Source of the DNA: Pavona decussata
Taxonomy: Eukaryota
Direction: 5' to 3'
NCBI GenBank assembly: GCA_977016875.1
Contig: CDRNST010000141.1
Span: forward strand, 806,001 to 870,000
Length of the DNA: 64,000 nucleotides
Shown here one piece after another: positions 12,557 to 40,963 of this stretch (position 1 is its first letter; every line of letters begins with the position of its first letter). Both the position numbers and the translations under genes were made by a program. Under the pieces are notes generated by a model. That model was not told the DNA's origin and searched no databases. It saw only the letters and a program-made list of their open reading frames with translations.

Positions 12557-13306
12557 ATTTCACAGTTGTCAAAGCCAAAAGATTGGACAAAATACCATAA
12601 ACATTTGTCCCTGCGAGTTTATTTCAGCAGGGGTGAGGCAGATCTGAATTTGGTAAATTTATTAATAAATTAATCGTACCACCGTGTCAGATGAGGTTTC
12701 CCGACAGCATCAATTGAAATAGCTGTATACCACAGTCTTCTCCAAAAACGTGGGGTCTAACTTGGGGTAAATCATACAAAATTATTTCACTTGCCCTTCT
12801 TACATATAATCATTTTAAACAAGTTCAAGAATTATTATTTATACCTCAGCTCTGCTTCTTATTTAAAGTGATGATCTTTCTTGCTTGCATGTGCCTTACT
12901 TCCAATCAGGTGCCATGATAGTATCGCTCTGTTTAGAATAAAAAAATAAAACAAGTCAATAAAGTAATGACTGAAATCTATTGTTAAACAGTTTTCAAAA
13001 AAATGCCAGGCAGGGAGAGTGTTTTAGCCAAGCTTATAAATTCATAAAAAGAAGTGACATATTGACCTCATTTCAGACTAGAAAGGCTCCAAGGAGCATG
13101 TTCCATACACGATGGGGGTAGGGGTGTGTAACCAGTCATTGAAGCTTTCACCTGTACTGTTGGTGCTAATAAAACAAATGAAGCCAATTAAAGTGAAACA
13201 ACTCACCTCTTCGAAATACTGTAGGTTGAGATTGATGAGGCCTCGTTGACACTTCCCTTTGCTCGCCCTAGCAGTTACCTGGAGACAGGTAAGCATGTTG
13301 TTAAGA

Positions 13307-13854
13307 TATCGTAAAATCCTTGTTATAAGACCTATACGTCCCCCCCTCCACTTATCCACTTATAACTGAGCTCCCTCAGTTATACATGTGTAAGCCTATC
13401 TATTTGTAAACAAATTTTTTATTCCGGTTATAAGCCCTCACCCTCTGCTTATACACCCATCTTTATGTAAACACCCCTCCCCCCACCCCTACACACACTA
13501 AAAAATGCTGTGGGATTCCTTTATACGAATCCCACTCATAAGCCCCCCACCCCTTAAAGAGGATGTAGAGATGGATGATTCAGACAATGACACTGATGAT
13601 GATGAAGAAGACGAGTTTGAAGTGGAAAGCCTTAATTAACCAAAGTCTGATCTTGTTTTGTTATGTTCCACTTGCAGTTAGAGTTTTGAATTTGGTCTTG
13701 TAGTCAAATAAAGAACCTTTTGGTATCAGCTTGTTTCTGAAATTTTTTTACTCCACCTATAAGCCCCAACCCCCCAACCCCCGAAATATAAACCCACACA
13801 AAACTCCATACAAAATTGTATAAGCCAATGGCTTAAAACCGAGATTTTACAGTA
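13307..13854. mobile_element. Non-autonomous Tc1/pogo-like element
   Basis: TA-flanked imperfect TIRs (tatcgtaaaatccttgttataag / cttaaaaccgagattttacagta); internal acidic coding remnant DDSDNDTDDDEEDEFEVESLN*. Confidence 0.5.
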
Positions 13855-16800: not shown

Positions 16801-16955
16801 AATGGGACAAATATGGCACGAATCTACTCAGTTAGGTTCATATTTATTCGACTACGTAGATTTTTGCTCTTTCAATTCACGTTCAAACCTTTCTCGATAT
16901 TTTTCACCGCAAGAAAGTTTATAACCCGTGAGAGAGAATTCCCCGTAAATGAACC

Positions 16956-17077
16956 AGGGTCGAGTTGTTGGAAGCCCGATTATCACTAATCCTGGGTTAA
17001 CTGTTGACAAAACCTATATGCTGTCATGGTAGTTAACCTGGATTAGCGTAAATCGTGCTTCGAACAATTCAGCCCAG
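16956..17077. mobile_element. Short palindromic MITE
   Basis: cagggtcgagttgttggaagcccgattatcactaatcctgggttaac versus gttaacctggattagcgtaaatcgtgcttcgaacaattcagcccag. Confidence 0.6.
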
Positions 17078-17848
17078 TACTGTGACGATACTTTAGTCTA
17101 AGCTTTAGGTCTAACTAGTCAGTTCAAATGATGTACAGTGTACGAATATAATTACTATTGGCGGCTTGTTGAACTCGTGCTCTCGTTAGCCACAAATCAC
17201 TTCATGAACAAAGAACTGTCGTAGTTGAACGTGTTCATTAAAAGCTAACAAAACTATATGAAAGGCAGGCTAGATTTCCCGGTGTTTACGAGATCAATTT
17301 TTTGATGATTAGTTTCATTTCTCTTACTACCAAAGCCTGGAATTTGTGTCTGATACTTCGCTAATTTGGGTAGAGGAGAGACTATATTTTGCGCGTTACA
17401 AGACGTTTTGGGATCCATGTTTTATGAAACAACAATAACAAATAGCTTTATTTACATGATCATAAAGTAGTTACAATATTGCAAAACCTTACTGAACGAT
17501 GAACCGAAGATTAAATCATTACGTAAGAAAGCAACCGATTGGCAAACACTATAACCCATTGCATTAAAGTTTTTGCATATCTTATATTGCATTTGAAATG
17601 GTAATTATTATGCTGTACTTCTTTTTGACAAGGTTTGGCCATGTACTTGTGAAGGAAAGTTTTTGCTTTTTTCATTTAACTTATGACACTTATTGCGACA
17701 GCGACATGATATTTCATTTCTTTTGTTCATCGTTCGTAGTCATGCGCTATGACGTGGACAGATGTCTGAATTTGGGCCCATCCGAAATCACTACCACATG
17801 CATTTGGTAGACCACTCGACTCGCGTTGGTTGTTCTACTTTTTGCTGT

Positions 17849-17901
17849 GCTACACCGTGCTGACTAGAGCCAACCAGCTCGAAACAGCTGTCCACGGTTG
17901 C
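17849..17901 (+). ncRNA. Type I hammerhead ribozyme with one core mutation (CUGACUA for CUGANGA), within a retrozyme/PLE-type repeat (~17780-18010)
   Basis: CCGTG-CTGACTA-GAGC-caacca-GCTC-GAAAC-AGCT-GTC-CACGG; all three stems pair. Confidence 0.75.
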
Positions 17902-18255
17902 CGCATTCTGTTGATTCTCGGTTTGGTCTCTATCATGTCGCTGACGTGTTAAGTTTTCTACGCAGTCCGATTAGCCTTGCAGATATTTGAGTAATTATTC
18001 AGTATTGACTTATAAGTTATAAGTCAGTGTACGCTATAACTCAGTGGGAGGCCACAAAACAGCTTTGCAACCTCACGTATTTTATACGAAGTTCCCAGGC
18101 TCAAGATTCAATCCGTCCAGTCCGTCTCTTACTTGGAGCTAATATGTAGAAATCCAAGTTCTGTATGGTGAAGAAACATTACTTGGAGTTCCTATTTTCT
18201 GACAGTCCTAGTCATATTTCTAGTTCCAATTTTACCGTACGAAATCCAAGTATTT

Positions 18256-21200
18256 TTAAACTATTGTACAGATCAAACTACGACCACAGTCACAGCTTTT
18301 GAACTTAAAATCTTCCAATTGTAAACCCTTCTTATTTTCATGTTCCTGACGTAACCGAGCCAAGTTGTCTTGAACGGTGGCAACAAATGGATGCTCAGTA
18401 CCATGCTCTTTTATCAAAATAGTCAACGCGCGTTCAAAATACTCCTTCGACTGCTCCAGGTCTCCTTGGTCACGGAGTACAGTACCCAAGTTGTTAAACG
18501 AAGTAGCAACATGAACATGTTGAGGTCCCAGCTGCTCTAATTGAATGGCCAGGGCACGCTCATAATACTCCTTCGCCTGTTCAAGGTCACCTTGGTCACG
18601 GAGTACTTTGGCCAAGTTGTTATAAGAAGTGGCGACATTAACATGATGTGATCCTGACTGCTGTAGGCGAATAGCCAGGGCACGCTGATGATACTCCTTC
18701 GCCTGCTCCAGGTATCCTTGGTGACGGAGTACAGTAGCCAAGTTGCCATAAGAACTGGCCACGTCAACATGTTGAGGTCCCAACTTTTCAAGTCGAATGG
18801 CCAGAGCACGCTCATAATACTCCTTCGCCTGCTTCACGTCACCTTGTTCACGGAGTACAGTAGCCAAGTTGTCATACGAAGTGGCGACATTAACATGTTG
18901 AGTTCCCAGCTGCTGTAGTCGAATGACCAAGGCACGCTCATAATGTTCCTTTGCGTGCTTCAGGTCACCTTGGAGACGGAGTACAGTAGCCAAGTTACCA
19001 TAACAACTAGCGACGTCAACATGTTGAGATCCCAACCTTTGTAGCCGAATGGCCAGGGCGCACTCATGATACTCCTTCGCCTTCTCCAGGTCACCTTGTT
19101 CACGGAGTACAGTAGCCAAGTTGCCATAAGAAGTGGCGACATTAACGTGTCGGGGTCCCAGCTGCTGTAGTCGAATGGCCAGGGCACGCTCATGATACTC
19201 CTTCGCTTGCTCCAGGTCACCTTGGTCACTGAATACAGTAGCCAAGTTGTTGTAAGAAGTGGCGACGTTAACATGTCGAGGTCCCAACTGCTGTAGTCGA
19301 ATGGCCAGAGCATGTTCATGATACTCCTTCGCCTGCTCCAGGTGTCCTTGGTGACGGAGCACAATAGCCAAGTTGCCATAAGAACTGGCGACGTCAGCAT
19401 GTTGAGATCCCAACTTTTGTAGTCGAATGGCCAGAGCGCGCTCATGATACTCCTTCGCCTGCTCCAGGTCACCTTGGTGACGGAGTACAATAGCCAAGTT
19501 ACCATAAGAACTGGCGACGTCAACATGTTGAGGTCCCAATTTTTTTAGTCGAATGGCCAGGGCACGCTCATGATACGCCTTCGCCTGTTCCAGGTCACCT
19601 TGGTCACGGAGTGCAGTAGCGAAGTTATTAAAAGAAATGGCGACATTAACATTTCGAGTTCCTAGCTGCTGTAGTCGAATGGCAAGGGCACGCTCATGAC
19701 ACTCCTTCGCCTGCTCCAGGTCTCCTTTGTGCCGGAGTACAGTAGCTAAGTTGCCATAAGAACTGGCGACGTCAACATGTTGAGGTCCCAACTCTTGAAG
19801 TCGAATGGCCAGGGCACGCTCGTGATACTCCTTCGCCTGCTCGAGGTCTCCTTGGTGACGGAGTACATTAGCCAAGTTGCCATACGAACTGGCGACGTCA
19901 ACATGTTGAGGTCCCAACTCTTGAAGTCGAATGGCCAGGGAACGTTCAAGATACTCCTTCGCCTGCTCCAGGTCACCTTGGTCACTGAGAACAGAAGCCA
20001 AGTTGTTATAAGAACTGGCGACATCAACATGGTGAGGTCCCAGCTGCTGTAAACGGATGGCCAAGGCACGCTCACGATACTTCTTTGCCTGCTCCAGGTC
20101 ACACTGGTCACGGAGTACAGTAGCCAAGTTGCTACAAGAAGTGGCGACACTAACATGTTGAGGTCCCAGCATTTTTAGTTGAATATCCAGGGAGCGCTCA
20201 TGATACTGTTGGGCAAGGTGAAACTCACCCAGTTCATGATGAACATTGCCAAGTAAGTAGTTGGCTATTAAGGCATCTTCTTCTATAACGACGCCATCAT
20301 GCTGTATTAATTTTAACGCTACATTCAAGAACACTTTTGCAGTGTTAAACTCGCAATGACTAAAACATATCTTGCTAAACCTTATGAAATAATTTGGATA
20401 GTTTCTTATATCCAACGTAAAGTTTTCAACGACTTGGACTATGTCGTCTCTGTTGAAAGTAGCTTGAAATTTTGTACTTAAGAACTTTAAATGAGGAACC
20501 ACATGCCTGCTGTTAATAACACAATCCAAGTTATCTATGCACTGATAAAATGATGTAATGACCCCGAGATCGATTTTGAAATTTACACCCACCGAATAGT
20601 TTTTAGTTTCAGATTTGATCACATCATGCACACCCTGATGTACGCGAATGTAGACATCACCATCATCCTCTTCAAATAGCAGCAGTTGGCCTCTTTGAAT
20701 CTGCATTCGAATGGTATTGTCATCCTTTAAGTCGTCATCTACATTCAGTATGTAGTTTATCACAATTTCAAGGTTTAATGGTTGTTGTGAACAGAGCGAA
20801 AGAAAAGTGAATGTGTGATTCATAACTTTGTCTGAGGACATCGCATTTTTCACGGCTAATGTAGTGGCTGCGGTCATGGATTTTGGATAGCCTCGATTTG
20901 TCTCAGTAAGAAGAGTCTCAGTTCCAGCGCACTGACCTTTCTTTAGTTTTTCCAGGTAGTCTTTCCATCCATAATTTGAAGAGGCTTTGTTCTCACAAAC
21001 TTGTTTAACAAATGTGGCAGCACTTGCCAGGGCAAGAGGTTGATAGTCTAATGTCTGTGCGACCTCCTCTTCCACCTCAGTGTCAGTGATACCAGAAAGC
21101 CTGGATAATAAGGAAGTGGCATCAGCAAGCTCCATACCTTTGCTCACTGAGATGTGACTGATGAGAGAGTTTTTTAAGGGGATGGAGGTAGTGTCCTGTG

Positions 21201-22335
21201 TTGTGATCAGCATTTGCCCTCCTAACCACTGCTCGTTCCCAGATTCTGGCAAATGAACACTTACTTGAGGTATGCTGATAACATTGTCAACTATCAGTAG
21301 CCATGAGGTGAAGAGCTCAACTTTTTTGCTAACTAACGCCTTGAGATTGGCGATCTTTTCCCCTATCTCTGAATCCTTAGAACTAAGGGTGTCTGTAATT
21401 GCATATTCTGAACACTTCAACAGTCGAGCAAAAGAGACAAACGATTCTAGCAGTGAGTCAAGACTTTCAGCATTAAGAGTCATTACAAATGAGGTGTTTG
21501 CGGCTTCTTGGAAAAATCTGTTTGCGACGAGTCCGGCCAACTGAGATTTGCCACTGCCAGGATTCCCTGAGATGTACAGGTAACTTAAGCAGCTTTTGTT
21601 GCCTTCTTTAAGTTCCTTTAGCTGTTGGGTTATTTTAGTCACCTCATCATCTCGACCGGCAACGTCGTGTGAAGGCTTGGGAGGGAGAATGCAAAATGGA
21701 GAAACTTCAATCCGAACTGGCTGATCTTCAAGGACCTGTCTTTCATCTTCTTCTTCTTGAGGTTCTGCTACTTTCTCTTGGAGTTCCTGATAGAGGTCTT
21801 CAACGATTTTCAAGATCTTTGCTAACTCCTCCGTTTGAAAACTTCTCCGGTTTCTGATTTCTTCAATACTTAAGGTGGAGAGCCCGAGTTCTTGAAATGA
21901 AAACTCAACCTTAGTTATGGCACTGTGAAACGCTGGGTTTGAAAGATGGCCTCGTGGTATGTGAGGAAATTCTTCATTACGAAATTTCCTGAGATCATCT
22001 ACATTGGACTTGACGACTGCGTTAAGACTGTTGCCGATACAATCCGAGTACAAAATGGCATAAAAAAGCACGGTGCAATCCCACTCAGCTCGATTTCCAT
22101 TTATCATGGTAGCGAAAAGTTTTGCACCTCGTCTTTTACTACTTGGAGACTCCCCGTTATAGAAGTCCAGCCCATTCCTCGGCTCGTCCTTCCATCCCCC
22201 CAATGTAGCCTTGTAGCGGTTGTCCCATTCCTGTTTGAAGATTGTTCGTAGACTCTCGGCTAGTACATCCGTGGTGATACAGCAAATCCTGAAGTAGTTC
22301 AGTTGTTGATCGCTGAATTTTGTTGCAGCGGCCAT
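18256..22335 (-). CDS. NLR-like STAND protein: HEPN (DZIP3-like) - coiled coil - NB-ARC-type P-loop NTPase - 15 x 42-aa TPR - CaaX; 1359 aa, single coding exon
   Basis: Uninterrupted ORF; first ATG (MAAATKF) at 22335 just after a ttttatag acceptor (~22360); RNEEFPH (Rx5H); Walker A GNPGSGKS; Walker B WLLIVDNV; MLITTQ; YQPLAL (GLPL equivalent); RVHQ (MHD equivalent); kinesin-light-chain-type repeats; ends in CTIV*. Confidence 0.93.
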   Translation of the reverse strand: MAAATKFSDQQLNYFRICCITTDVLAESLRTIFKQEWDNRYKATLGGWKDEPRNGLDFYNGESPSSKRRGAKLFATMINGNRAEWDCTVLFYAILYSDCIGNSLNAVVKSNVDDLRKFRNEEFPHIPRGHLSNPAFHSAITKVEFSFQELGLSTLSIEEIRNRRSFQTEELAKILKIVEDLYQELQEKVAEPQEEEDERQVLEDQPVRIEVSPFCILPPKPSHDVAGRDDEVTKITQQLKELKEGNKSCLSYLYISGNPGSGKSQLAGLVANRFFQEAANTSFVMTLNAESLDSLLESFVSFARLLKCSEYAITDTLSSKDSEIGEKIANLKALVSKKVELFTSWLLIVDNVISIPQVSVHLPESGNEQWLGGQMLITTQDTTSIPLKNSLISHISVSKGMELADATSLLSRLSGITDTEVEEEVAQTLDYQPLALASAATFVKQVCENKASSNYGWKDYLEKLKKGQCAGTETLLTETNRGYPKSMTAATTLAVKNAMSSDKVMNHTFTFLSLCSQQPLNLEIVINYILNVDDDLKDDNTIRMQIQRGQLLLFEEDDGDVYIRVHQGVHDVIKSETKNYSVGVNFKIDLGVITSFYQCIDNLDCVINSRHVVPHLKFLSTKFQATFNRDDIVQVVENFTLDIRNYPNYFIRFSKICFSHCEFNTAKVFLNVALKLIQHDGVVIEEDALIANYLLGNVHHELGEFHLAQQYHERSLDIQLKMLGPQHVSVATSCSNLATVLRDQCDLEQAKKYRERALAIRLQQLGPHHVDVASSYNNLASVLSDQGDLEQAKEYLERSLAIRLQELGPQHVDVASSYGNLANVLRHQGDLEQAKEYHERALAIRLQELGPQHVDVASSYGNLATVLRHKGDLEQAKECHERALAIRLQQLGTRNVNVAISFNNFATALRDQGDLEQAKAYHERALAIRLKKLGPQHVDVASSYGNLAIVLRHQGDLEQAKEYHERALAIRLQKLGSQHADVASSYGNLAIVLRHQGHLEQAKEYHEHALAIRLQQLGPRHVNVATSYNNLATVFSDQGDLEQAKEYHERALAIRLQQLGPRHVNVATSYGNLATVLREQGDLEKAKEYHECALAIRLQRLGSQHVDVASCYGNLATVLRLQGDLKHAKEHYERALVIRLQQLGTQHVNVATSYDNLATVLREQGDVKQAKEYYERALAIRLEKLGPQHVDVASSYGNLATVLRHQGYLEQAKEYHQRALAIRLQQSGSHHVNVATSYNNLAKVLRDQGDLEQAKEYYERALAIQLEQLGPQHVHVATSFNNLGTVLRDQGDLEQSKEYFERALTILIKEHGTEHPFVATVQDNLARLRQEHENKKGLQLEDFKFKSCDCGRSLICTIV
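18345..20260 (-). repeat. 126-bp coding tandem repeat (15 TPR units)
   Basis: Recurrent SYxNLAxVLRxQGDLEQAKEYHERALAIRLQxLGPQHVxVA; DNA motif tactccttcgcctgctccaggtc recurs every 126 bp. Confidence 0.95.
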
Positions 22336-24747
22336 ATTCACCTTGTGTGACTGCAAGTTCTATAAAAATTAATAATCTGCTGTTAGCAAAACCGTGGTGG
22401 AATCTGGGTGGCCTGTTTCAGGTTCTAACGCCCCGTCCACACATGAATCTTCTCATTTGTAAAGGGAAATATTTTGTGTGTGGCCTGTGTAAATAAAAGT
22501 TTTTGTAAACGCTGACGTTACAGCATCTGATCCAGTTTGCAAACAGGAGAAAGTATCGGATATGGCAAATGATCTACGCGTGCTCAATTCAAGGGCTCAG
22601 AGTTTCTTGGGGACGGGTGAAATCTAATGTAAACTATCGCGGTATATGTGTCAATGGATTATAATTATGCAGTGGCGAAAGTAAACGCATACGCCTGAAC
22701 CGGGTTTAAGATGACGGAAACACACAATAGTGGCAGGCTTCCGTTTTCCCGGGAACACTCGACAGGTAAAACACTGAAAGTTCTGCTCGAGAGAGAGGAA
22801 GTTCTAGAAAGCCATGAGTAAGTTGCTCTGAGCAAGGGAAATAAGTAACTGTAGTAGAAAGCGTGAGATTTAAGATAACAAGAGTCTTTTTAATTCGATA
22901 TAGATCCCATCTACTGGGTAAGGCGACTGACGTGCTTCGGCCAGCGAATTACAAACATTGAATTCCCTTTTAACCATTTATTTTAAAACCCTGGAGTAAG
23001 GTTCACAAGCAATCACTTTGTGCTACTTTAACAAAGAAGGACGTAAGTGATAATATCTAGGGAGGCTTGCGAGCGAGTCTCGTGAACCTGTACAACGTTC
23101 GACGCCTGATCCAATAGTGCGCCTTCTGTTTACACAGAAGGTGAACCATGGGTGAAAACAAAAGGATCTTTACAACTTTTAAAACTACTTTAGTACTGTA
23201 TCTGGTTTATCTAACATTCAGATAATACTTCATTTCATTTGCCCACTAGAGCCGGTATTCCTTATGGCAATTGTTGGGGCAGATTGGTCCCCACTACAAT
23301 TGAAGATTCGTTTTAAACATTTGCTGTAAGGCTGTTTTTTCTTTGTGACAATAGGATTGTTTTAATGCTCTGCTTGTCGGCGCACGTGGAATTTGCGAAG
23401 GCGGGTGTAGGGAGTGAGTGGACAGCTCACTTCCTCCATGGCCAGAAGGCTGAATTTCAAGGGCGGTTTGATTTCACTCCACACAATCAAAACGATTCAC
23501 AAAAATAGGTCTTCATTTCACACAGTATTCAAATTACAGGGTAAGCCATTTTTCTTTCTCAAACCCGAGTGGACAAAAGGTAATTGAACTGTGGAGTTAT
23601 CTTACATGTGATAATTTCTGGTTGGTGACTTTGCATAAAAAGTTAGAAAGCGCTCTATTATGTGCACTAAAATTAAATATTCTTTTGTCTACTATAAAGT
23701 AGCCATACTAGCCTCGTTCAAGGTAAACTGATATTCTTTTGATTTTTGACTTCAAGAACGAGGTTTCGGTAGGTTGGGGTTTTCAGGTTCAATTTTTTAA
23801 TAGCCACATTAAATTGACCTACGACTCATCCGGAAATTTTTAAAGCTACAATAATATGGAGTCTAATTATAGTGTAGATTACTCCACAGAGAACAACTTA
23901 AACGACATATTTATTCCATAACACCTACTAAAGGTCAATAACAAGTAAATGAAAATTTGCTACTTTCAAGTGTCGGAACTGAGGTAAACAATCCAAACTA
24001 CCAGTTGACTTTGAGGGATTTAAAGTATTGACATGATCGACTAGAACCTATGCAAATGAAACGCTTTGTTGCTTGAAAAGAAATAAAAGGCGAAGTAAAA
24101 TTGCTGTTGTGGCTGTCAAATTAGGGTTTTTCTACTGTTTCCCAACTAAGGAATTCTATCGAATGGGCTGATTGGCTTAACAGGCGCTTCAAAATCAGTT
24201 GCAGCCAGGGAAAAGTCCAGGCTGTAGTCCACAATCAATTTTACAAAAACCCCTCGCACTCTGCGTCAGTAGACGTCTTCGTGTCGTTAAGTTCCGCACC
24301 ACTAATTTCTAACTGTTTTTTAGGTTGTTGTTTTCGAGAAACCCGAATATTCAGTGATGAATTGAAACATACTTAGAACATATGCATCGCATGTTAATTT
24401 AACACGTTGTTTTACCATCACAAATAAGAGGTAAAATACAAACAGCAACTGATGATGCCCTACACTTGAGCTTCATTTGAATGGTAATGAGCTACTCACA
24501 TTAGATAGGATTTCATTCACACACTTCGAAGTTTAACTGAACCATGGCCAAATTTCATGGCTCGGTCCAACTGTACTATCGCCAAGTACTCTACAGAAGC
24601 CGACATCAAATCAATGGAAATAGTCCTTTTTTGGCCCCATGCATCAAAATGGATATAACAAGTGCAATTTTGTAACTTTGCAGAATTTTGCAAGTTTGCA
24701 TGGCATTCACGAAAGAGAATCCAAAGTCAGTAATAAAGAATACTCAC

Positions 24748-24840
24748 CCTTTGCTGTGGTTCCAACTTATTTCCGAGTAAACTAAATCAGCAGGCGGCAG
24801 TTATCAATATTGTACAAAAGAAAAATCTCTTTGAATTTCA
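24748..24840 (-). other. Putative non-coding first exon of the STAND-TPR gene
   Basis: Strong donor AGG|GTGAGTA at 24748/24747; homologous to the first exons of the peptide genes; the nearest downstream large coding exon is the STAND ORF. Confidence 0.55.
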
Positions 24841-24876
24841 ACTTCAAGACATGACGTGTTTGTCTATTTTCAGCAT

Positions 24877-25123
24877 AGTTAATTGAAGGACTGGTTATGA
24901 AACCTTGGTGCTGCCATTTATGTTGTCAGGTCCGCGAGTGTGCACAATCCTTTGTTTGATGTTTACACCTCAGTATCTTAACGACCCTCAACAGGAACGT
25001 TTCTATTGGTCAGTCGCTCGAACACACTATTGTGGTTTGTGCACGGTAAAGGCCAAAAATGCGAACAAAAACGTTTAACAAAGAAGTTTGTCAGGTTTCA
25101 TAACCATTGCTTTCATTAACTAT
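24877..25123. mobile_element. MITE with ~30-bp TIRs
   Basis: atagttaattgaaggactggttatgaaacct / aggtttcataaccattgctttcattaactat. Confidence 0.65.
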
Positions 25124-25627
25124 GATTTTCAGCCATCGCGGGTCCAGATCACGCGATTTTTATCTCGACCTGTCAACACTTCCCTGCGACAACATTTGAA
25201 TGCAATATTGCATGAAACTCCGCGTGATAGTTTGAAAGCCAAATTTCATTAAGAGTTCCATGAAGTGTGAAAATCGTATAATTTAGAAACTTTATTATTG
25301 TGCTTAAGTCTCGCGATTACTAACATGTTCACGTGATAGATGGCATGACGTTCGTTTTCTGACTGCATAAAGTACGAAAATGGCGATGTCTCTCACAACT
25401 TGGGAGACAACTTCAACTTGATGTTTCTTGTCACGCTCCCTGCACATTTCTCAGTTGAATGCATTCAGTCATCAACTTTATGCAACATAGTTACTGAATT
25501 TAGCGTTTGGGAAAACACTTTTCCAAGTTGAGTGCACCCAGGCAAAATCTTTATCCAAATTATGGTTATCACAATGGGGAGAAAAGGACCTGAAACGTTA
25601 CTAACATCAGTCTCACATTTATCACGT

Positions 25628-25930
25628 NNNNNNNNNNNNNNNNNNNNNNNNNNNNNNNNNNNNNNNNNNNNNNNNNNNNNNNNNNNNNNNNNNNNNNNNN
25701 NNNNNNNNNNNNNNNNNNNNNNNNNNNNNNNNNNNNNNNNNNNNNNNNNNNNNNNNNNNNNNNNNNNNNNNNNNNNNNNNNNNNNNNNNNNNNNNNNNNN
25801 NNNNNNNNNNNNNNNNNNNNNNNNNNNNNNNNNNNNNNNNNNNNNNNNNNNNNNNNNNNNNNNNNNNNNNNNNNNNNNNNNNNNNNNNNNNNNNNNNNNN
25901 NNNNNNNNNNNNNNNNNNNNNNNNNNNNNN
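25628..25930. other. Assembly gap (N run)
   Basis: Run of N. Confidence 1.
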
Positions 25931-26149
25931 ACGACTGAATTTTACTATTTTAAATTTTGAAAGAACTTTACTATTTTAGCCGAGCAAGAGAGCTAGGATC
26001 AAGGGGCCGAGGAAATACTCTCCTACTTAATTGTCAGTTAAGCGTTTAGCACTACCAAGGATAAAATTTGAAGGCGATGTTACAATCTTACGTAGAATGC
26101 GTTCAGAGTGACTGAAAATGCATCTAAATACGGCAGACGATTATTGAAG

Positions 26150-27250
26150 CAAATTTGAACTACTGGAACCGGTTGCAGCGGACGTGGTTTTCATTTCGTT
26201 GGTCACACTCATTCGCCACAAGTCGAATCTTATCGGTTCTTGCATTATGGACTGGATGTGCAATATTGCCACATGCTAAAACCATAGCTGATTCATGTTG
26301 CTCAGAACCATGATGATGATGATTATTACTATTATTTCGACTTGCAAATAAAGATAACCAGTTCTTAAATCATCATCGTAACTGTTACGTTCTTCCAGGT
26401 ATTTGATTTGTGAGGATATGTCTTTGGTGTTCAGTCTTTGGTCTCTAGTGCTCAAAATAGATTCTTCGATATACTTCAGTCTTCAAGTTCTACTGGGAAG
26501 GTGTTTCAGTTCTAACCTAAGACTCTCACAGGAGCTCTTTTTCTTTTATTTCTTGGTACTTTAGGCGCTGTGATGGAAGTATAAAGTGGTATTTTGCGAA
26601 GCACTGTTTGATAGAAAGTTGCAAAACATCCGGCATCTTTTCTAATTTTGATGAGCACATCCGTCGTGACAAGCTGGTTTTCTGTAAGGTCTCCGATAGA
26701 TTGTCGGTATGGGAAAAAATTTTCTGCAAAGAACAGGACAAACTTTCTCATTTGTGCTTGGCACCGAAAACTCCTGCCGGGAATATCTGATCCTGGTCTT
26801 GTTTCAAGGCAATCATTCCATGGCATTAACAATCTTTCAATCCTCAGTTGTCGATGGCCTTTTGAAAACAAATGTTTGCACAGTCCATCTTAGTTCATCT
26901 TGTTGTACTGAACTTAGTCAAGCCAGATGCAACCATGTCTTCCTCTTTTACTTCTATATTGGACTTTTAAAATTTGTCCGAGTATGGTTTCGCGCTTTGG
27001 CGAGAACTTAGCAATTTCTGCTTGGTGTCGTTCATTGCCTCTGATAATATTTTGCAGTTATTTGTTGCATCTTTTACGCTGATAATTAGCGAATGAGCAT
27101 GGCAATGTGTAGGGGGAGCATTTTTCTGAAAGTATCTTGAATTTGCTTCGCAACACTCGATTTTTTACCCAACATGCAGCTCGGGCCATTACATGGAAGG
27201 TTGCAATCTGATAAAAGCATCTTTTATGACCAACACCACCGTGCCATATG
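26150..27250 (-). mobile_element. Decayed hAT-type (ZMYM1-like) transposase
   Basis: Frameshifted minus-strand motifs MLGKKSSVAKQIQD, PTHCHAHSLIISVKDA, KFSPKRETILGQI, FATFYQTV..PKVPRNKRKRAP, YRRIYFE, and a dimerisation-domain-like MNQ..HVAILHI..RTDK..VANE. Confidence 0.8.
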
Positions 27251-27627
27251 CAGTATTAGAAACCAAATAAAAGCACCAAAAATCTTCATGCACCTTCGGT
27301 AACTTATTAACTGCGCCTTCGGTAATGTATGAACTGCGTCTTTCGCCCCCAATCATCTACACTAGCGTTTTCACAGGTAGGGGGGTGAATTAGAGGCTCC
27401 AACCCACTCCCCCACGTGAGAAGATTGGGTCTCGAAGTCGGAAACAAAGATTTTCAGTTTCGCTTGGTTCAGCGTCTTTCAAATTTTTGTTTTACTTACA
27501 AAAGACTTTGAAATCCTAAATAAAAAAAAAATGACGATACTACGAAAGAACAAAATTTCTTCCATTATCCAACAAATAATCTGATCCCCACATTTTAATG
27601 ACACATCTAAGCCACTTAACAATTCTC

Positions 27628-27849
27628 TCAATGTTTCTTGGCGGGATCTATGTTACTTTTGGAGGCTTCGCAGTTTTCGTCGACTACTTTTTCGGTGGCG
27701 GTGGGGTCTCTGCGGTCCCTGTGCAGTCGGCCAACGCCGCGGCGTCGCTTTCTGTGCATCCTTCGCGCTCGCCCTTGGCTGTTAACGGTGGCAGTTAACA
27801 TCAGATTAACCAGTAACAGAACAAGTAAGAGATATACCACTTTTGCCAT
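27628..27849 (-). CDS. Secreted Arg-rich peptide precursor, copy 1 (73 aa)
   Basis: MAKVVYLLLVLLLVNLMLTATVNS | QGRARRMHRKRRRGVGRLH | RDRR | DPTATEKVVDENCEASKSNIDPAKKH; acceptor tcttctctctgcag 5 nt before the ATG; ATTAAA ~30 nt after the stop; ORF conserved in three paralogs. Confidence 0.85.
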   Translation of the reverse strand: MAKVVYLLLVLLLVNLMLTATVNSQGRARRMHRKRRRGVGRLHRDRRDPTATEKVVDENCEASKSNIDPAKKH

Positions 27850-28377
27850 GTTCACTGCAGAGAGAAGATCATTATGAGATATTAAAATGTAGAATGATCA
27901 CTTGAACCTGAAATAATCTTTGTAAGTTTATAACACGCGCTAATTTATAACAACTAATAATTGTAAATAAGTTTTCTTCTTTTAATGAAGGGGGAGGAAC
28001 CTCCGACTCCCGCTCCACTCTCCCCAGGTTGCGCTCACCGTTACAAACTAAGATGGCGGGGATTGGTAAGTTAAAGCACCCAAACGAATCATTTTGTATA
28101 GGCTTACTCAAATATGTCTTTAAATGGACAGAAAAAGATACCTTCTGCAGGTACAATGAAAATTTGCATTGGGACGTACGCTTATATAACAAATATTTGC
28201 GCAATAGCGGAACTACGTAAAACTAAAGTGATTGATAGTATAAAATATGAAGCAAATGAAATAATAATAATAACAACAAAAAATAAAATAATAATAATAA
28301 AAGGAAAAAATCTAGTAAATTTCTTCGCGAACATTGAGGCCATGTGGAAGAAGTGTCCTGCCTTTTGTGATTAAAAA

Positions 28378-28925
28378 GGCTTCCCTTACGGATTGAGTCT
28401 CGGTTAGAGTAGACTTTTTCTATGGGGATTAATTGCATGTCGTTAGCGGTGTGGTTAGGAGCGGTGAGGAAGTGTTCTGCGGCTGTGGTGGGTTTAGATT
28501 TAGTGTTAAGGTTATCTATGGTGCGGCGGTGTTCATTAACTGAAGCGGTCTTTTAAGCGTGGTTTAGTCTCTCCTATGTATTGTAAATTATAGCAGTTAC
28601 ATTGGATCATGTAGATTAGATTTTAGTTTCACAGGTCAGGTTAGATGATAGGGCGTGTTTCACCGGTGGAAAAAAAGGTGTAGTTAGTGAGACCATCGGA
28701 AATGTATGGGCAGGTGGCGCAATTTTAACCGCAACGATAGGAGCCGGGAAGGAGTTGTGGGTGGGGATTAGTCGAAATACAAGAAAGTTTAGCCGAAACC
28801 AGTAAGCCAGGTAGGTTAGGAGATCGTCTGAAGGCCACAACAGGTAAATTTGGAAAAACCTTTTTGCAGCGGTCAAACGAGAGCAGTAAATGGCAATGTT
28901 TTTTAATGATGTTGGAGATGTGACC
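28378..28925 (-). mobile_element. Penelope-like retroelement fragment (GIY-YIG region) in the intron of peptide copy 1
   Basis: PVVAFRRSPNL..LLVSAKL, CG*NCATCPYI, TCETK/NLIYMIQCNCYNLQYIGETKPRLKDRF/NEHRRTI, AAEHFL..NHTANDMQLIPIEKV; stops and frameshifts present. Confidence 0.88.
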
Positions 28926-29338
28926 ATTTTCTGTTCTCGTCTGACCGCTGCAAAAAGGTTTTTCCATGATGAACATATGTTCCGGGAATTTATAGCTCAC
29001 TCACGTGATTTGTTCTCTCGCGCGGTGATTGTTCGTTACGCGGCGTCGTGATTGTAGCACGCGGGTCTCTGACGGAGGACGTGGAATCACCTCTGAACTG
29101 ACTTGAATGATGTGAAATCAGTAACAATTTAGCCGCTGTCCGTGAAAGGTCAAAATCTCAGGCTTTAGTTGTCTGTAGTCCGAAATTCTTAGATTTTGCA
29201 AAACATCTCGGTTTACACAATAGGCCTCGGTGTCAAGATACGCCGTCGTGATGCTCACGAGTTTCACGAGTTTGCATCAAATGAAAGCCACAAAAAAGTG
29301 CCGGAATACAAAGTTTCTAAAATAAAACAAATACTCAC

Positions 29339-29484
29339 CCCTGCCTAAGTTTCCAACTTGCTTTGGAGTGAGTCAAAGCAGCAAGCAGTAGTTTCTCAGT
29401 ATTGCCGCGTAGAAGTGAACCTCGCCTCAACTTGACCAACTCAGCGAAATTGAATTCGAGATCCAAGACAAGGCCTCTTTTATA
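29339..29484 (-). promoter_or_regulatory. TATA box and non-coding exon 1 of peptide copy 1
   Basis: TATAAAAG at 29484-29477; ATG-free ~115-nt exon ending GG|GTGAGT at 29339. Confidence 0.65.
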
Positions 29485-30962
29485 TTCCGTTATTGCATGT
29501 TCAAATCATGTATTTTTTATCTTGACATGACAACGCTTCTCTGATCTGCGGGTGTATTGACAGGAATCCATGTGATCCCGGTCCCCGACCTGAAATGATC
29601 CCCAGAGTGAACCACAAATGATGCCGTGAAAAATAATAGAAATGCTCCGTTTACCGGGGAAATGAAAACAATCCATACCCTGTCAATATAAATAACACTG
29701 CGTATTGAGTTCAAAAAGTACATGCTGTGAGATCTCTGCTGTTAAGTCGGCGTTGATTTCCATTCAAACGAGTCAAAACACACGTTCGTGTCCTGCATTT
29801 TAGTACCAGAATGAGATGAACTGAAGAAGGAAATGACTAAAATGAACTGTAAAAAGTACATTTGACGCGATATTTAATTAAACGAAATGGTAAATAAGGG
29901 CAAACGAATGAGGATATCTGCTCTCTTCTGTTCCAGGCGAAAGAGATTTGGCAGGAAGGTAAAAGGAAAACTACATGCTATGATAATTTATGATTCTGTT
30001 TACCGTTCAAATTAAATGGGCGATAATTAATGGGGTAAACCAAGAACAAAACACACACTCCACTAAAGTTGGTAGACTAATTTTAACTAAGAAAAGAGAA
30101 AGAAAAGATTAATTGTCCGCTGTTCATATGAAAACCTGGTCATCACCGCCATAATTTCGCTTCTTGGTGATCACTTGTAACGGATTGTGTTTCAGTTCTG
30201 GTCTTAACCGCAGCAATCTCTAACACAAAAAGTCACGATGTAGCATGTAAAATGCAAGTCGAAAAAGTTAAGGCAAAGTTATCACGCCTGGGTAAAGACA
30301 GACTTAACTCAATTGGCAATTAGCTAATTAAGAACTAGAGCGGGAAAACGCGCACGAGATATTGAGAAACACAATTTGGCTTTTAATTCCTTCTAGTAGA
30401 AAAAAAAAATCGCAGTTGTTAGTCAAAAGCAAAGCAAACATTGTACTTAAAAACTACTCAGGGCCGGCTGTGTAGACATTCTCTGCGTCTGCACTCTTTC
30501 CCAAAATTGTTCATAAGAAATTGGCGCGTTAACTGAAATGTTCCTGTCATGAAAAATTTGTACCCTCCCCACAGGTACCCCAAGCTCTATGAAAAGCAAT
30601 GGAACTAAAATGCACTAAAATCGCGCTCAATCGCTCCATAAACCACACAGGAGAAAGCAAAACAGACAAGGGAGTTCAGGTAGGGATATTTTTATTGAAA
30701 ATTGTTGGTATTTTTAAATTGAAGCAGGAATGGTTTTTTTTTTCCATACAAATCCTTATAATTTCGCCGTTACGCAATGTTGTCCGTGACGCTCAAATTA
30801 TATTACAACACTCACGCAAAGGTCACGGCCTATATCTCTCATAGCACTTAGGGTACCTGTGCCCTCCCCCGGCAAATTAAATTCATATCCTGAAAAGATT
30901 TTGGAAAACTGGCTGAAATATCGCCTTCCTAAGACGCCAATTCAGTTCATATCATAGAAAGT

Positions 30963-31045
30963 TCATTGCCGTGTTGTGTGAGAGTTTCCTTTCCTTAGAT
31001 AGCGGCAATCCTCCAGTTCATCGCACCAGGCCCCAAAAGTCGTCT
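30963..31045 (-). pseudogene. 3' remnant of a coiled-coil/CRYLR gene
   Basis: Encodes TTFGAWCDELEDCRYLRKGNSHTTRQ*, near-identical to the ends of the ORFs at 34314 and 41864; the upstream part is missing. Confidence 0.9.
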
Positions 31046-31491
31046 ACCTTGCGAGCAGAGGCCCTTCGATCTTCCTAGATAAGTCGGGAAGTCATGCGCC
31101 TTCGGTAACTTATAAACTGCGCCTTCAGTAATGTATGAACAGCGCTTTTTGCCCCCAACCATCTACACTAGTGTTTTCACGGGTAGGGGGGTGGGTTAGA
31201 GGCTCCAACCCACTCCCCCACGTGTGAAGATTCAGTGGGTCTCGAAGTCGCAAATGACGGTTTTGTTTTGAATTTCGCGTCTGGTTCAGCATCGGGTCTT
31301 TCAAACTTTTGATTTACTTACAAAAGAGTTTGAAATCCTAAAACAAAAGAAATGAGCATACTACGAAGGAGCAAAATCATCTGCCATTGTCCAAAATTCA
31401 TACCCAGCTGATTCAAACCCAAAGTTTGATTTGCAACAAATATTCTGATCTCCACATTTTAATGACACATCGAAGCCATTAAACAACTCTC

Positions 31492-31701
31492 TCAAAGTTT
31501 CTTGGCGGGATCTATGTTACTTCTGGAGACTTCGCAGTTTTCGTCGACTACTTTTTCGGTGGCGGTGGGGTCTCTGTGGTCCCTGCGCAGTCGGCTACGG
31601 CGCCGGCGTCGGGCATTGAACATGCCTAGCCCTTGGCTGGTGGAAGTTAACATCAGATTAACCAGTAGCAGAGCAAGTAAGAGATATACCACTTTTGCCA
31701 T
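31492..31701 (-). CDS. Secreted Arg-rich peptide precursor, copy 2 (69 aa)
   Basis: MAKVVYLLLALLLVNLMLTSTS | QGLGMFNARRRRRSRLR | RDHR | DPTATEKVVDENCEVSRSNIDPAKKL; same acceptor and ATTAAA as copy 1. Confidence 0.85.
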   Translation of the reverse strand: MAKVVYLLLALLLVNLMLTSTSQGLGMFNARRRRRSRLRRDHRDPTATEKVVDENCEVSRSNIDPAKKL

Positions 31702-31818
31702 GTTCACTGCAGAGAGAAGATCATTATGAGATATTGAAATGCAGAATGATCACTTGAACCTGAACTAACCTTTATAAGTTTATAACACGCGGTAATTAAT
31801 AACAACTAATTGACGCAT

Positions 31819-31849
<31 letters not shown>
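31819..31849. repeat. (ATG)n microsatellite
   Basis: About 10 perfect units. Confidence 0.95.
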
Positions 31850-33046
31850 CCTTTCTTTAACCGCGGCAGTGTTTATAGTATATAGTACATAGGGCAGAAC
31901 ATTAAACATTGTTAAAACGTTACATTGTTACATACGAAAACAATAACATTGTAATGTTGTCAAAAATCCCAACTAGAAGGAGGCAGAGCAGTTGGTTACA
32001 AACGTCAAAGATAAAAAAGGTGCCTGTCTTTGTTGTATGAGCATCCCTCTGATAAGAATGCCACAAAAAAGCAAATTTGTCGTCGAAAATGCGAAAAAGG
32101 GCCAGTCCCCTACTTTTCCATGGCATTTTCAAATTTTCGTGCACGCTTTGATCGAGCCCGCCATCTTAGTTTGTAACGGCGAGCGCTTCCTGGAGAGAGT
32201 GTCTGAACTACCAGCGGATATTGGCTGGAGTACATTTTATCCGCTGTATAGCAGTTTATCCACTGGAAACAGCTATCCGCTCTTTAAACAAGTGGGGCCA
32301 GATGTTTCGTTCCCAGCCAATTTTTCGAGAAAGGGCTAAGCTCGAAACGTCTGGAATGTTTTTAGGTTTTTTTTGGCACTTCTCCACCATTTACTCAACT
32401 TTCAGGATAGCTTTACTCGCGGGGGGTGAGCAAGCTGGCGTTTCTGGTGATGACTCAGTTTATCTGTTTGTCAATGTTTTCAGCGTTTTCTTAAAAATTT
32501 TCAATGTCAAGCTGAGAATAATGGTTATGTTAATATCAGGAGATAAAAAAGGATAGGTCAGACTACTTGCTTAGGAGAAAATAACCATTTAGTGGTTAGA
32601 TGGGCTTTGCATCAAGGCTTGAAGTTTACCGTGTTTCTAACGTGCGCGCACTGATGAAGCAAGAACTTGTGGGCTGTGAGAACGCCTAATGCAGTTTAAT
32701 GGAACCACCATCTTTGAAGAACCAGGAGCAGATAGTTGGGTCAGAAGGATGTCAAATCGGGTTAACTTACTGACCCAACTATCCGACCCTGGGTCTCCGA
32801 GGACGTGGAATCACCTCTGAACTGACTTGAATGATGTGAAATCAGTGACAATTTAGTTGTCCGTGAAAGGTCAAAATCTCAGGCTTCAATTGTCTGTAGT
32901 CCGAAATTCTTAGATTTTGCAAAACACCTCGGTTTACAAGATAAGCCTCGGTGTCAAGATACGCCTTCGTGATGCTCTCACGATTTTGCATCAAATGAAA
33001 GCCACAAAAGTGAATCCAAAGTTTCTACAGTAAAAAAAATACTCAC

Positions 33047-33486
33047 CCCTTCCTTAGTTTCCAACTTGCTTTGGAGTAAATCAAAGCAGCAGTTTCCAGT
33101 ATTGCGTAGAAGTGAACCTTGCCTCAACTTGATCAACAGCGAAATTTAATTCGAGAACAAGACAAGGCTGCTTTTATATTCAGCTATTGCGTGTTCAAAT
33201 CGTGCATTTTTTATCTTGACCTGTCAACGCTTCTCTGATCTGCGAGTGCATTTGCACGAATCCATGTGGACCGCGCCGCAAATGATCTCGGGGCCGCTAA
33301 TGATCCCGGTCCCCAACCTGAAATGATCCCCAGAGTGGACCATAAATGATGCCGTGAAAAATAGTAGGAATGCTCCGTTTACCGAGGCAATGAAAACATT
33401 CCATACCCTGTCAATATAGAAAACAATACGTCTTGGGTTCAAAAAGTACATGCTGTGAGATTGACGAAAAGTCGGCGGGGATTTCC
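33047..33486 (-). promoter_or_regulatory. Exon 1, TATA box and kappaB-like site of peptide copy 2
   Basis: Donor GG|GTGAGT at 33047; TATAAAAG at 33178-33171; GGGGATTTCC at 33477-33486. Confidence 0.6.
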
Positions 33487-37405: not shown

Positions 37406-37621
37406 TCAACGTTTCTTGGCGGGATCTATGTTACTTTTGGAGGCTTCCCAGTATTCATCGACTACATTTTCAGTGGCGGTGGGGTCTCTGCGGTCCCTGT
37501 GCAGTCGGCTTTCGCTGTGGTGTCGTCCACTGCGTTTCCTTCGCCCTTGGCTGTTAACGGTGGCGGTTAACATCAGATTAACCAGTAACAGAACAAGTAA
37601 GAGATATACCACTTTTGCCAT
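37406..37621 (-). CDS. Secreted Arg-rich peptide precursor, copy 3 (71 aa)
   Basis: MAKVVYLLLVLLLVNLMLTATVNS | QGRRKRSGRHHSESRLH | RDRR | DPTATENVVDEYWEASKSNIDPAKKR. Confidence 0.85.
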   Translation of the reverse strand: MAKVVYLLLVLLLVNLMLTATVNSQGRRKRSGRHHSESRLHRDRRDPTATENVVDEYWEASKSNIDPAKKR

Positions 37622-40117: not shown

Positions 40118-40521
40118 CCAATCTCGACTCCAGAGCTCTTCCCTTCTGCGCAGTTTAATGGAACCACTATCTTTGGAGATTTAGGAGCAGATAGTTGGGT
40201 CAGGAGGATGTCAAATCGGGTGAACTTACTAACCCAACTATCTGACACGGTCTCCGAGGACGTGGGATCACCTCTGAACTGACTTGAATGATGTGAAATC
40301 AGTGACAATCTAGTTGTCCGTGAAAGGTCAAAATCTTAGCTTCGGTTGTCTATAGTCCGAAATTCTTATATTTTGGAAAACACCTCGGTTTACAATTCTT
40401 GGCCCCTTGCCGTGTATCAAGATAGGCCTTCATGATGCACCGTTTTCACGCAATTTTTTACGAGTTTGCATGTAATGCCACAAAAGTGAATCCAAAGTTT
40501 CTAAAATAAAAAAATACTAAC

Positions 40522-40963
40522 CCCTGCCTACGTTTCCAACTTGCTTTGGGGTAAATCAAAGCAGCAAGCAGTAGTTTCCCAGTATTGCGTAGAAGCGAAC
40601 CTCGCCTTAACTTGATCAACAGCGAAATTTAAATTGAGATCAAGACAAGGCCTCTTTTGAATTCAGCTATTGCGTGTTGAAATCGTACATTTTTTATCTT
40701 GACCTGTCAACGCTTCTCTGATCTGCGAGTGCATTTGCACGAATCCATGTGGACCGAGCCGCAAATGATCGGGGCCCCCAACCTGAAATGATTCCCAGAG
40801 TGAAAAGTAATAGAAATGCTCCGTTTACCGGGGCAATGAAAACATTCCATACCCTGTCAATATAAATAACACTGCGCCTTGAGTTCAAAAAGTACATGCT
40901 GTGAGATTGACGAAAAGATCTCTGCTGCATGTTAAGCCCGCTGTTAAGTCGGCGAGGATTTCC
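40522..40963 (-). promoter_or_regulatory. Exon 1 and promoter of peptide copy 3 (TATA degraded)
   Basis: Donor GG|GTTAGT at 40522; TTCAAAAG at the TATA-equivalent position (40661-40654); GAGGATTTCC at 40954-40963. Confidence 0.55.

Follow-up and report, generated by a model that had tools for sequence, protein, structure and literature searches.

The window, that is, the 64,000-nt stretch of a Pavona decussata contig analysed here, carries on the minus strand a gene for a predicted STAND-TPR protein and three tandem copies of a gene whose predicted product is a small, secreted, Arg-rich peptide of restricted taxonomic distribution (Table 1). The STAND-TPR coding sequence extends from the ATG at 22335-22333 through 1359 intact codons to the stop at 18256-18258 and encodes a protein with a weak HEPN-like N-terminus, followed by a P-loop STAND NTPase and then by a TPR array. 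The TPR array matches TPR_12 with an E value of 2e-159; the matches of the NTPase region to AAA_16 (6.6e-7), NPHP3_N and nSTAND1 are all under the Pfam cut-offs, and those to NB-ARC and NACHT are marginal only. With a P-loop NTPase followed by a TPR array, this is, as judged from the predicted domains, an NLR-like STAND NTPase-TPR gene. Upstream of the coding exon, we predict an intron that includes a conserved island (24080-24202) and a branch-point motif GCTAAC (22382-22387), and a non-coding leader exon which lacks ~40 nt of the exon found in the paralogs and whose 5' end probably lies about 30 nt downstream of a TATA-like box. In the peptide genes, a strong polypyrimidine-AG acceptor directly precedes each ATG. 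No exon or open reading frame considered here crosses the assembly gap, so the reading frame is unaffected and the gap has no bearing on the finding.

Table 1. Features of the STAND-TPR gene and the three peptide genes in the window
Feature	Coordinates	Strand	Remarks
Single coding exon, STAND-TPR (NLR-like)	18256..22359	-	24-nt 5'UTR part 22336-22359
Predicted intron, 2388 nt	22360..24747	-	GT 24747-24746, AG 22361-22360
Predicted non-coding leader exon 1, STAND-TPR	24748..24843	-	3' end from conserved donor
TATA-like element CTGAAAATAGAC	24862..24873	-	kept in STAND paralogs; aligns with TATAAAAG of peptide genes 1 and 2
MITE-like insertion, 251 bp	24874..25124	.	copy-specific; 32-nt terminal inverted repeats 24874-24905 / 25093-25124
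Upstream promoter region, STAND module	25125..25627	-	homologous among STAND paralogs, 71-75% identity; reaches assembly gap
Assembly gap (N)	25628..25930	.	intergenic, between STAND promoter block and 3' flank of peptide gene 1
Peptide gene 1	CDS 27628-27849	-	leader predicted to splice to 27854
Peptide gene 1 module copy	29259..29543	-	TATAAAAG 29477-29484; leader exon about 29454-29339; donor GT 29338-29337
Peptide gene 2	CDS 31492-31701	-	leader predicted to splice to 31706
Peptide gene 2 module copy	32980..33267	-	TATAAAAG 33171-33178; leader exon about 33148-33047; donor GT 33046-33045
Peptide gene 3	CDS 37406-37621	-	leader exon end 40522, predicted to splice to 37626
Peptide gene 3 module copy	40456..40754	-	degenerate TATA TTCAAAAG; weaker donor GTTAGT 40521-40516

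The first-pass annotation of this DNA had claimed homology between the block upstream of the STAND gene and the exon-1/donor blocks at the three peptide genes, with the same orientation and the same GT donor. Pairwise blastn comparison of the four blocks within the window bears this out: 24628-24842 aligns with 40396-40620 (66% identity over 229 positions, E 6e-16), 24685-24793 with 32983-33092 (73%, E 6.5e-13), and 24717-24812 with 29304-29404 (70%, E 3.5e-8), and a second common block links 25120-25186 to 33171-33237, 40662-40720 and 29477-29543. The homology is also evident from a profile HMM that was derived solely from paralogous loci at 18 other places in the genome and is thus independent of the window copies, which matches the three peptide blocks with E values reaching down to the 1e-35 range (2.8e-35, 1.2e-27 and 7e-26). 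All copies are on the minus strand, and the donor is GTGAGT, except for GTTAGT in peptide gene 3. The last exon bases (24748, 29339, 33047 and 40522), each with GT next to it, and the first bases past the AG (22359, 27854, 31706 and 37626) lie exactly where they had been placed. Likewise, no relic of a peptide exon was detected between 24747 and 22360, where the best tblastn match has an E value of 0.11, nhmmer yields none, and there is no gene-strand open reading frame of at least 40 aa.

The similarity between the start contexts GTGAATATGGC (STAND) and GTGAACATGGC (peptides), also noted at the first pass, does not reflect homology. The acceptor/start profile built from 16 STAND paralogs, in which the start-context consensus is GCTGAATATGGC, finds nothing at the peptide acceptors even with a 1.2-kb target and E values up to 100, and the distance from the acceptor to the ATG is 24 nt in the STAND genes vs 6 nt in the peptide genes. 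The part of the module common to the STAND and peptide genes is limited to about 300 bp, roughly from -85 to +80 nt into the intron; of the upstream promoter region, only the proximal ~85 nt (25125-25210) are common to the peptide genes. The peptide copies lack the CACGTG-type and GAAAGTGAAAGT-type motifs, both of which are kept in the STAND copies, so identical regulation with the STAND genes should not be assumed.

A search of the 602-Mb genome with a sequence-only covariance model of the 3' end of exon 1, the donor and 75 nt beyond it, in which 150 of about 222,000 candidates were scored, identified 31 copies of the module: it heads all 23 STAND-TPR paralogs, 3 copies belong to the peptide genes and 4 are orphans. 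Altogether, 27 of the 31 copies precede a STAND or peptide gene in the same orientation, including a second tandem module in front of C44:720082. Among the members of the STAND-TPR clade (n=23, defined by at least 74% amino acid identity in the N-terminal part), the module is found upstream on the same strand in 23/23, so that its copies are tied to gene starts; the distance is 1.0-8 kb in 20 of these genes and 11.7, 14.0 and 20.2 kb in the remaining three. A full paralog lies within 9 kb downstream of the module in 15/20 loci inspected. The paralogs are clustered, with 17 on one contig, and homologs are widespread across Scleractinia (1432 matches at E<=1e-30). Some motifs of the module, picked out by eye only, are E-box-like, CRE-like and IRF/ISRE-like.

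The splice signals are conserved throughout the clade. The donor AAAGG/GTGAGTATTC (in some cases GTAAGT or GTCAGT) is present in 22 of the 23 aligned non-window copies, and GT is found in the window copy and the three peptide copies as well, the sole GT-less copy being an orphan. On the acceptor side, all 16 aligned paralogs contain GCTAAC followed, after ~20 nt, by the acceptor TTTTTATAG/A located 24 nt ahead of the ATG; the similarity of this region among the paralogs fades some 100-250 nt farther upstream. Within the module, conservation is highest in the first 40 nt of the intron (82-88% identity vs 74-79% at four-fold degenerate sites), and the identity of exon 1 among the STAND copies (78-82%) barely exceeds the four-fold-site level. 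Sequence constraint on the module is clear only around the donor.

The window copy is distinguished by a MITE, flanked by an 8-bp target-site duplication (ATTTTCAG at 24866-24873 and 25125-25132), that lies between the proximal promoter and the TATA-like box, at position -1 of that box. Contig depth over this element in four runs ranges from 928 to 18195, whereas bins of the coding sequence mostly have tens to hundreds and at most ~740, suggesting a high-copy element. Contig depth is also high within the predicted intron, at about 23550-23899, where a repeat may lie. The hallmarks of a transposable element are confined to the separate 251-bp insertion and do not extend to the leader block. Taken together, the insertion and the ~40-nt exon deletion could have impaired the window copy.

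Alignment of Logan contigs from 4 runs, which are too short and too mixed with 90-95%-identical paralogs to speak against such splicing, to positions 20400-25627 revealed neither the 24748-22359 junction nor cross-junctions; contigs with a peptide junction were not seen in this species either. A non-canonical joint from 22594 to 24092 (GC..GC, with a 25-nt side) was set aside as repeat or paralog noise. The peptide homologs P0001 and P0002 are on unspliced contigs of genomic type, devoid of a splice joint, as are the matches to N-terminal fragments (P0130 and P0126); a 20-nt motif of exon 1, searched for in metagenome contigs, yielded a single bacterial match, by chance. Spliced architecture is observed directly in Orbicella faveolata, where comparison of the JGI contig L055 with the genome locus L056 identifies a spliced transcript of a STAND-TPR homolog: a non-coding exon of 267 nt is followed, across a GT-AG intron of 6.66 kb, by a coding exon that begins 44 nt ahead of the ATG. 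The leader exon of the Orbicella gene has no sequence similarity to the module, so the module cannot be shown to be older than the present clade. For the P. decussata genes themselves, we infer both the use of the donor and the site of transcription start.

Taking these observations together, it seems probable that the module is the common 5' end of the lineage-specific, 23-gene STAND-TPR clade and that ~300 bp of it were copied locally to head the peptide genes. The segments 24748-24873 and 25125-25627 would then constitute the window gene's copy of a module that consists of a promoter, a non-coding leader exon and a 5' splice site. Each gene of the clade would be transcribed from the TATA-like core promoter, and the leader exon, ~95-140 nt in length, would be spliced over an intron of 1-8 kb (in a few genes, up to 20 kb) to a single coding exon that starts 24 nt before the ATG. 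The copied ~300 bp, most likely a product of local partial duplication, would now supply the promoter, leader exon and donor to the three tandem peptide genes, with the peptide coding exon contributing its own acceptor, unrelated to that of the STAND genes.

The transfer probably proceeded from the STAND genes to the peptide genes. Neither the peptide family nor its variant of the block has copies in the genome beyond the three in the window, and only ~300 bp are shared, which makes this direction the likelier one. The first-pass annotation had preferred a capture of the STAND coding exon downstream of a duplicated peptide leader, mentioning the reverse in parentheses; given that the peptides are window-only vs 23/23 STAND genes with the module, it is the parenthetical option that is favoured, and a one-off capture does not fit a module carried by the entire clade, although the proposed homology of promoter and leader with the peptide genes stands. 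The trees do not settle the direction: in the unrooted block tree, which joins the peptide blocks to the STAND block of the window (support 98/92), the peptide branch is long (0.34) and, under a clock, could hold the root, so that the tree is not securely rootable, and the tree of the coding sequences, rooted with outgroups, has a basal polytomy.

An unlikely alternative is that the module originally belonged to a peptide gene and that the ancestor of the STAND clade exchanged its own leader for a captured duplicate before the expansion to 23 genes. If the block tree were rooted on the long peptide branch, the window STAND copy would be the first to diverge, and the lower identity of exon 1 between peptide and STAND copies (64-69%) than among STAND copies is as expected for a split that predates the radiation of the clade. 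However, the peptide family is confined to three copies at one locus, with its own relatives detected on no more than two contigs, both of a close relative, and the tree of the coding sequences weakly pairs the window gene with L043 (81/69) rather than placing it at the base. Moreover, STAND homologs of a distant coral already possess a leader exon, a long intron and a single coding exon, so the clade ancestor needed no foreign leader. That the module was not detected at more distant STAND subfamilies would also fit a peptide origin, but this negative result is weak because only 150 of the about 222,000 candidates were scored. We consider it rather improbable that the window block is a relic, inactivated by the MITE and the exon deletion, such that the STAND gene is silent or starts elsewhere and the block has no present function. 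The separation of the proximal promoter from the TATA-like box by 251 bp, the shortened exon, the missing junction in the short, paralog-mixed Logan contigs and the occurrence of the module at paralogs that are pseudogenes (L044, L045 and L048) are compatible with such decay; nevertheless, the 1359-codon frame, the donor, the branch point and the acceptor are all intact, the target-site duplication of the MITE regenerated the TATA-like box, and runs X1 and X5, whose RNA origin is no more than a guess, contain near-identical contigs over the coding sequence.

Far less plausible still is the view that the block is repetitive or mobile DNA, dispersed without relation to transcription starts: although there are several genomic copies and a true MITE adjoins the block, 31 copies in 602 Mb, 27 of them gene-linked and co-oriented, effectively refute this reading, and the block is not bounded by terminal repeats or target-site duplications, with the flanking homology running into promoter and intron as it does in gene duplicates. 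We give next to no credence to the possibility that the copies encode small RNAs of the spliced-leader type, which would donate their leader in trans. A short exon is indeed followed by a highly conserved donor-proximal segment with ACTTTGG, and leader and donor pair in a weak helix; yet there is no conserved secondary structure (-0.76 kcal/mol, no covariation) and no Rfam match, and the copies occur strictly in cis and share the orientation of one gene family. To our knowledge, spliced-leader trans-splicing has been described in hydrozoans but not in corals.

Returning to the local copying of the STAND module, which we favour, the sharing is a clear-cut, if rather ordinary, instance of a new gene using the start of an old one. 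It provides a precisely bounded example of the way in which a lineage-restricted secreted-peptide gene can take a ready-made promoter, leader exon and donor from an immune-receptor-like neighbour, and it defines, for a coral NLR-like clade of 23 genes, the conserved regulatory module at the 5' end, a possible handle on the regulation of expanded receptor families. It also corrects gene models, in that apparently 'intronless' STAND genes probably possess an upstream non-coding exon missed by annotation based on open reading frames. More speculatively, the peptides might be recently born, restricted secreted effectors of antimicrobial-like or signalling-like nature that arose when the module was copied beside a proto-ORF; if so, which we regard as doubtful, intracellular sensors and a secreted effector would be switched on by related promoters, and, all units having one orientation, a leader might now and then be spliced to a coding exon farther downstream, that of the STAND gene among them.

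In corals, tandem expansions of STAND-TPR ('nephrocystin-3-like') genes, as part of pervasive tandem duplication, and lineage-specific expansions of NLR-like genes have reportedly occurred, and the genes described here conform to this pattern in their single large coding exon, clustered paralogs and hundreds of homologs in Scleractinia. We know of no description of a conserved non-coding leader module in this clade or of its sharing with a non-receptor gene, and keyword searches of the literature for these returned nothing. In the protocadherin and UGT1A clusters, several alternative first exons each have a promoter to themselves; the locus resembles these clusters in the repeated promoter and first-exon units in one orientation, from which splicing of an upstream leader to a downstream acceptor is possible in principle, but there the first exons contain coding sequence and are all joined to one common set of constant exons, whereas here each leader has its own coding exon. 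Spliced-leader RNA genes, present in hydrozoans, nematodes and other organisms, resemble the module in that their non-coding exon is short and that both the donor and a segment downstream of it are conserved; unlike these, the module lies in cis, is restricted to one family, and has no conserved fold, tandem spliced-leader array or Rfam match. The closest parallel might be the origin of new or chimeric genes by partial (tandem) duplication, through which a promoter and a 5' exon come to lie ahead of sequence new to them (e.g. Rogers et al. 2017, PMC5460883; reviewed in Katju 2012, PMC3449122). The present case differs from such chimeras in that the parent belongs to a large immune-receptor-like family, the recipient is a tiny secreted-peptide frame devoid of detectable relatives, and the new gene, known from sequence alone, has itself been triplicated. 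As in those chimeras, a short segment with a promoter, a 5'UTR exon and a donor is joined to an unrelated coding exon, apparently through a local tandem event that left the parent gene intact.

The sequence block that heads the STAND-TPR (NLR-like) gene, consisting of a promoter, a predicted non-coding leader exon 1 and its donor, is homologous to the exon-1/donor blocks of the three neighboring secreted-peptide genes, and this homology is more general than the first-pass annotation noticed. All four blocks align: in a blastn search within the window, the STAND block matched peptide blocks 3, 2 and 1 with E-values of 6e-16, 6.5e-13 and 3.5e-8, respectively, and a second short block shared by the STAND and peptide units was found further upstream. 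The strongest test is a window-independent profile, constructed from paralogous loci at 18 other places in the genome, which matched the three peptide blocks with E-values of 2.8e-35, 1.2e-27 and 7e-26. The donor and acceptor positions proposed for the STAND gene (24748 to 22359) and the peptide genes (29339 to 27854, 33047 to 31706 and 40522 to 37626) are exact, and a search of the intervening 2388 nt, from the block to the STAND ORF, for a remnant peptide exon found none, as had been claimed. The supposed match between the start contexts did not hold: a profile of the STAND acceptor and start region has no match at the peptide acceptors, the spacing from acceptor to ATG is 24 nt in STAND vs 6 nt in the peptide genes, and what the two have in common is TGAAyATGGC, including the usual A at -3 and the Met-Ala start.

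Features of the STAND-TPR gene, its 5' region and the peptide genes (window coordinates)
Feature	Position	Strand	Description
STAND-TPR ORF	18256-22335	minus	1359 codons; STAND P-loop NTPase and long TPR array
Peptide gene, 3 copies	upstream of STAND ORF	minus	two exons; 69-73-aa peptide
Promoter (homologous part 1)	25627-25125	minus	~500 bp
Block and ~450 nt of intron (homologous part 2)	24873-24319	minus	abuts promoter directly in paralogs
Intronic island (homologous part 3)	24202-24080	minus	small
Intron of variable length (part 4)	between island and ATG-proximal part	minus	unalignable
Pre-ATG stretch (homologous part 5)	last 100-250 nt upstream of ATG	minus	homologous with paralogs
MITE-like element	24874-25124		251 bp; 32-nt terminal inverted repeats; 8-bp target-site duplication ATTTTCAG

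The N-terminal ~215 residues of the STAND-TPR protein show a weak match to HEPN (HEPN_Swt1, E 0.17), and HEPN families are precomputed for some of its homologs; the closest named homologs of this stony-coral protein come from Montipora, Orbicella, Oculina, Porites and Stylophora. Each of the three peptides combines a signal peptide with an Arg-rich core, and the three copies are parts of a triplicated cassette. The assembly gap at 25628-25930 is intergenic and is crossed by no exon or ORF of the STAND and peptide units discussed here. The intron of peptide gene 1 contains a near-perfect palindrome (28851-28966) with a sub-threshold match to Rfam mir-335 (38.5 bits vs the gathering score of 64), probably a hairpin-forming repeat rather than a known miRNA. 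Peptide gene 3 differs from copies 1 and 2 in its weakened donor, GTTAGT (40513-40523), and degenerate TATA box, TTCAAAAG (40652-40659), and may be decaying or under different regulation.

The block turns out to be a 5' module common to a whole STAND clade. A search of this coral's own genome with the block as the query identified ~25 further copies, the majority on a single contig (C44). Among the 20 of these loci that were retrieved for comparison, 15 contain a full, co-oriented STAND-TPR paralog downstream (72-80% amino acid identity). A sequence-only covariance model, covering the 3' end of exon 1, the donor and 75 nt, detected at least 31 module copies in the 602-Mb genome, including 4 orphans and 3 that head the peptide genes; the same search found no module at more distant STAND subfamilies, a weak negative because 150 of ~222,000 first-look candidates were scored. 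All 23 STAND genes in the genome whose N-terminal domain is at least 74% identical are preceded by a co-oriented module, at 1.0-8 kb in 20 cases and at 11.7, 14.0 and 20.2 kb in the other three, for which the linkage is less certain.

Several individual loci show additional variation. One STAND gene (ATG at C44:720082) is headed by two tandem modules 1.8 kb apart (G000:C44:711969-713971), suggesting that module-only duplications occur within the STAND cluster as well. At another locus on this contig (L039; G000:C44:180500-190400), three tandem orphan modules (L039:701-2932) stand 1.4 kb upstream of a co-oriented ORF (L039:4313-5401), whose 362-aa Cys-rich product has a signal peptide and a hydrophobic C-terminus and matches no Pfam family. 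The ATG of this ORF is preceded, at a distance of 25 nt, by a pyrimidine-rich AG acceptor, and the gene may be a second non-STAND user of the module. Three module-bearing STAND paralogs have broken ORFs: L044 (contig C213) carries an early frameshift or stop, L045 (C1) is interrupted by a stop at codon 132, and L048 (C44) is truncated after ~431 codons.

The splice signals are well conserved. The donor AAAGG|GTGAGTATTC is kept across copies, with GTAAGT or GTCAGT in some, and the only copy without the donor GT is an orphan. At the other end of the intron, GCTAAC, followed after ~20 nt by TTTTTATAG|A, 24 nt upstream of the ATG, is present in 16 of the 16 aligned paralogs; an extra TGCAG in the window is not conserved in the paralogs, which leaves 22359, the position originally chosen, as the conserved acceptor. 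Identity to the paralogs rises from 74-79% at 4-fold degenerate sites through 78-82% in the exon to 82-88% over the initial 40 nt of the intron and is ~60% beyond, so that clear constraint is confined to the donor region. The spliced architecture has direct transcript support in a homolog from Orbicella faveolata: a JGI transcript contig (L055) that codes for a 959-aa member of the STAND-TPR family aligns to the genome locus (L056) in two pieces, implying that a non-coding exon, 267 nt or longer, is joined across a GT-AG intron of 6.66 kb to a coding exon that begins 44 nt upstream of the ATG. In sequence, the Orbicella leader does not resemble the module described here. The L056 gene is annotated as a single-exon CDS; the spliced transcript reveals the upstream non-coding exon 6.66 kb away. 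Logan contigs of Pavona decussata from four runs, mapped to 20400-25627, cover the CDS, with coverage ending near the ATG; these contigs are mostly paralog-derived and contain no 24748-to-22359 joint, and other contig searches likewise yielded no spliced contig for this coral.

The homology between the window and the paralogous loci falls into five parts (see the table). Because promoter and block directly adjoin in the paralogs, the 251 bp between them are an insertion private to the window copy; its insertion point coincides with the STAND module's TATA-like box. In four runs, the depth of contigs on this segment (928 to 18195 per bin) is far above that over the CDS (where most bins are in the tens to hundreds and the maximum is ~740), suggesting a high-copy MITE. 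A second high-depth interval in the STAND intron (23550-23899; 5 to ~1035 per bin in four runs, with 0 in flanking intron bins) is possibly a repeat. The intronic island shows 63-85% identity among many paralogs within an otherwise unalignable intron.

These observations bear on other interpretations of the block. Copy number and strict gene linkage exclude a dispersed repeat, one of the two findings that would have undone the original proposal. A spliced-leader RNA gene is unsupported, given that we found neither a conserved fold nor an Rfam match and that all module copies lie strictly in cis. The MITE insertion, together with a ~40-nt exon deletion, could impair the copy in the window; however, the STAND ORF and every splice signal are intact. 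Among regulatory motifs recognized by eye, a TTGACA..TGTCAA palindrome, two CACGTG/CGCGTG motifs, ACGTCA and GAAAGTGAAAGT are conserved near the TATA-like box in the STAND copies. The peptide copies keep the palindrome, with a TATA box better than that of STAND, but no longer contain the E-box-like motifs or GAAAGTGAAAGT; common promoter ancestry is therefore no guarantee of co-regulation.

As to the direction of transfer, the peptide units and STAND loci share only ~300 bp, a stretch that starts ~85 nt before the TATA box and ends ~70-80 nt inside the intron. Both the peptide family and its variant of the block are limited to the three window copies in this genome, and the only two peptide homologs found beyond it are on contigs ~94% identical in DNA. 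In the module tree, the peptide copies and the window STAND copy are separated from all others (support 98/92), and the peptide branch is long (0.34); in the CDS tree, rooted with other corals, the 16 paralogs are monophyletic with an unresolved base, and the window gene pairs weakly with a paralog, L043 (81/69). The first-pass annotation was right in part, in that both gene types carry homologous leader modules; its first choice, capture of the STAND exon by a peptide promoter, is the less likely direction. The 23-to-3 distribution of copies, the confinement of the peptides to a single locus and the older leader-exon architecture in STAND homologs favor transfer from STAND to the peptides, which we consider fairly probable: a local partial duplication would have placed the STAND promoter and leader in front of the peptide genes. 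A root on the peptide branch, implying a peptide-first origin or an older common ancestor, is less likely than this STAND-to-peptide transfer. New genes are known to arise by capture of a promoter and leader through partial duplication (PMC5460883, PMC3449122); the STAND/peptide case is not a new kind of system but a new, well-delimited instance in the context of immune genes.
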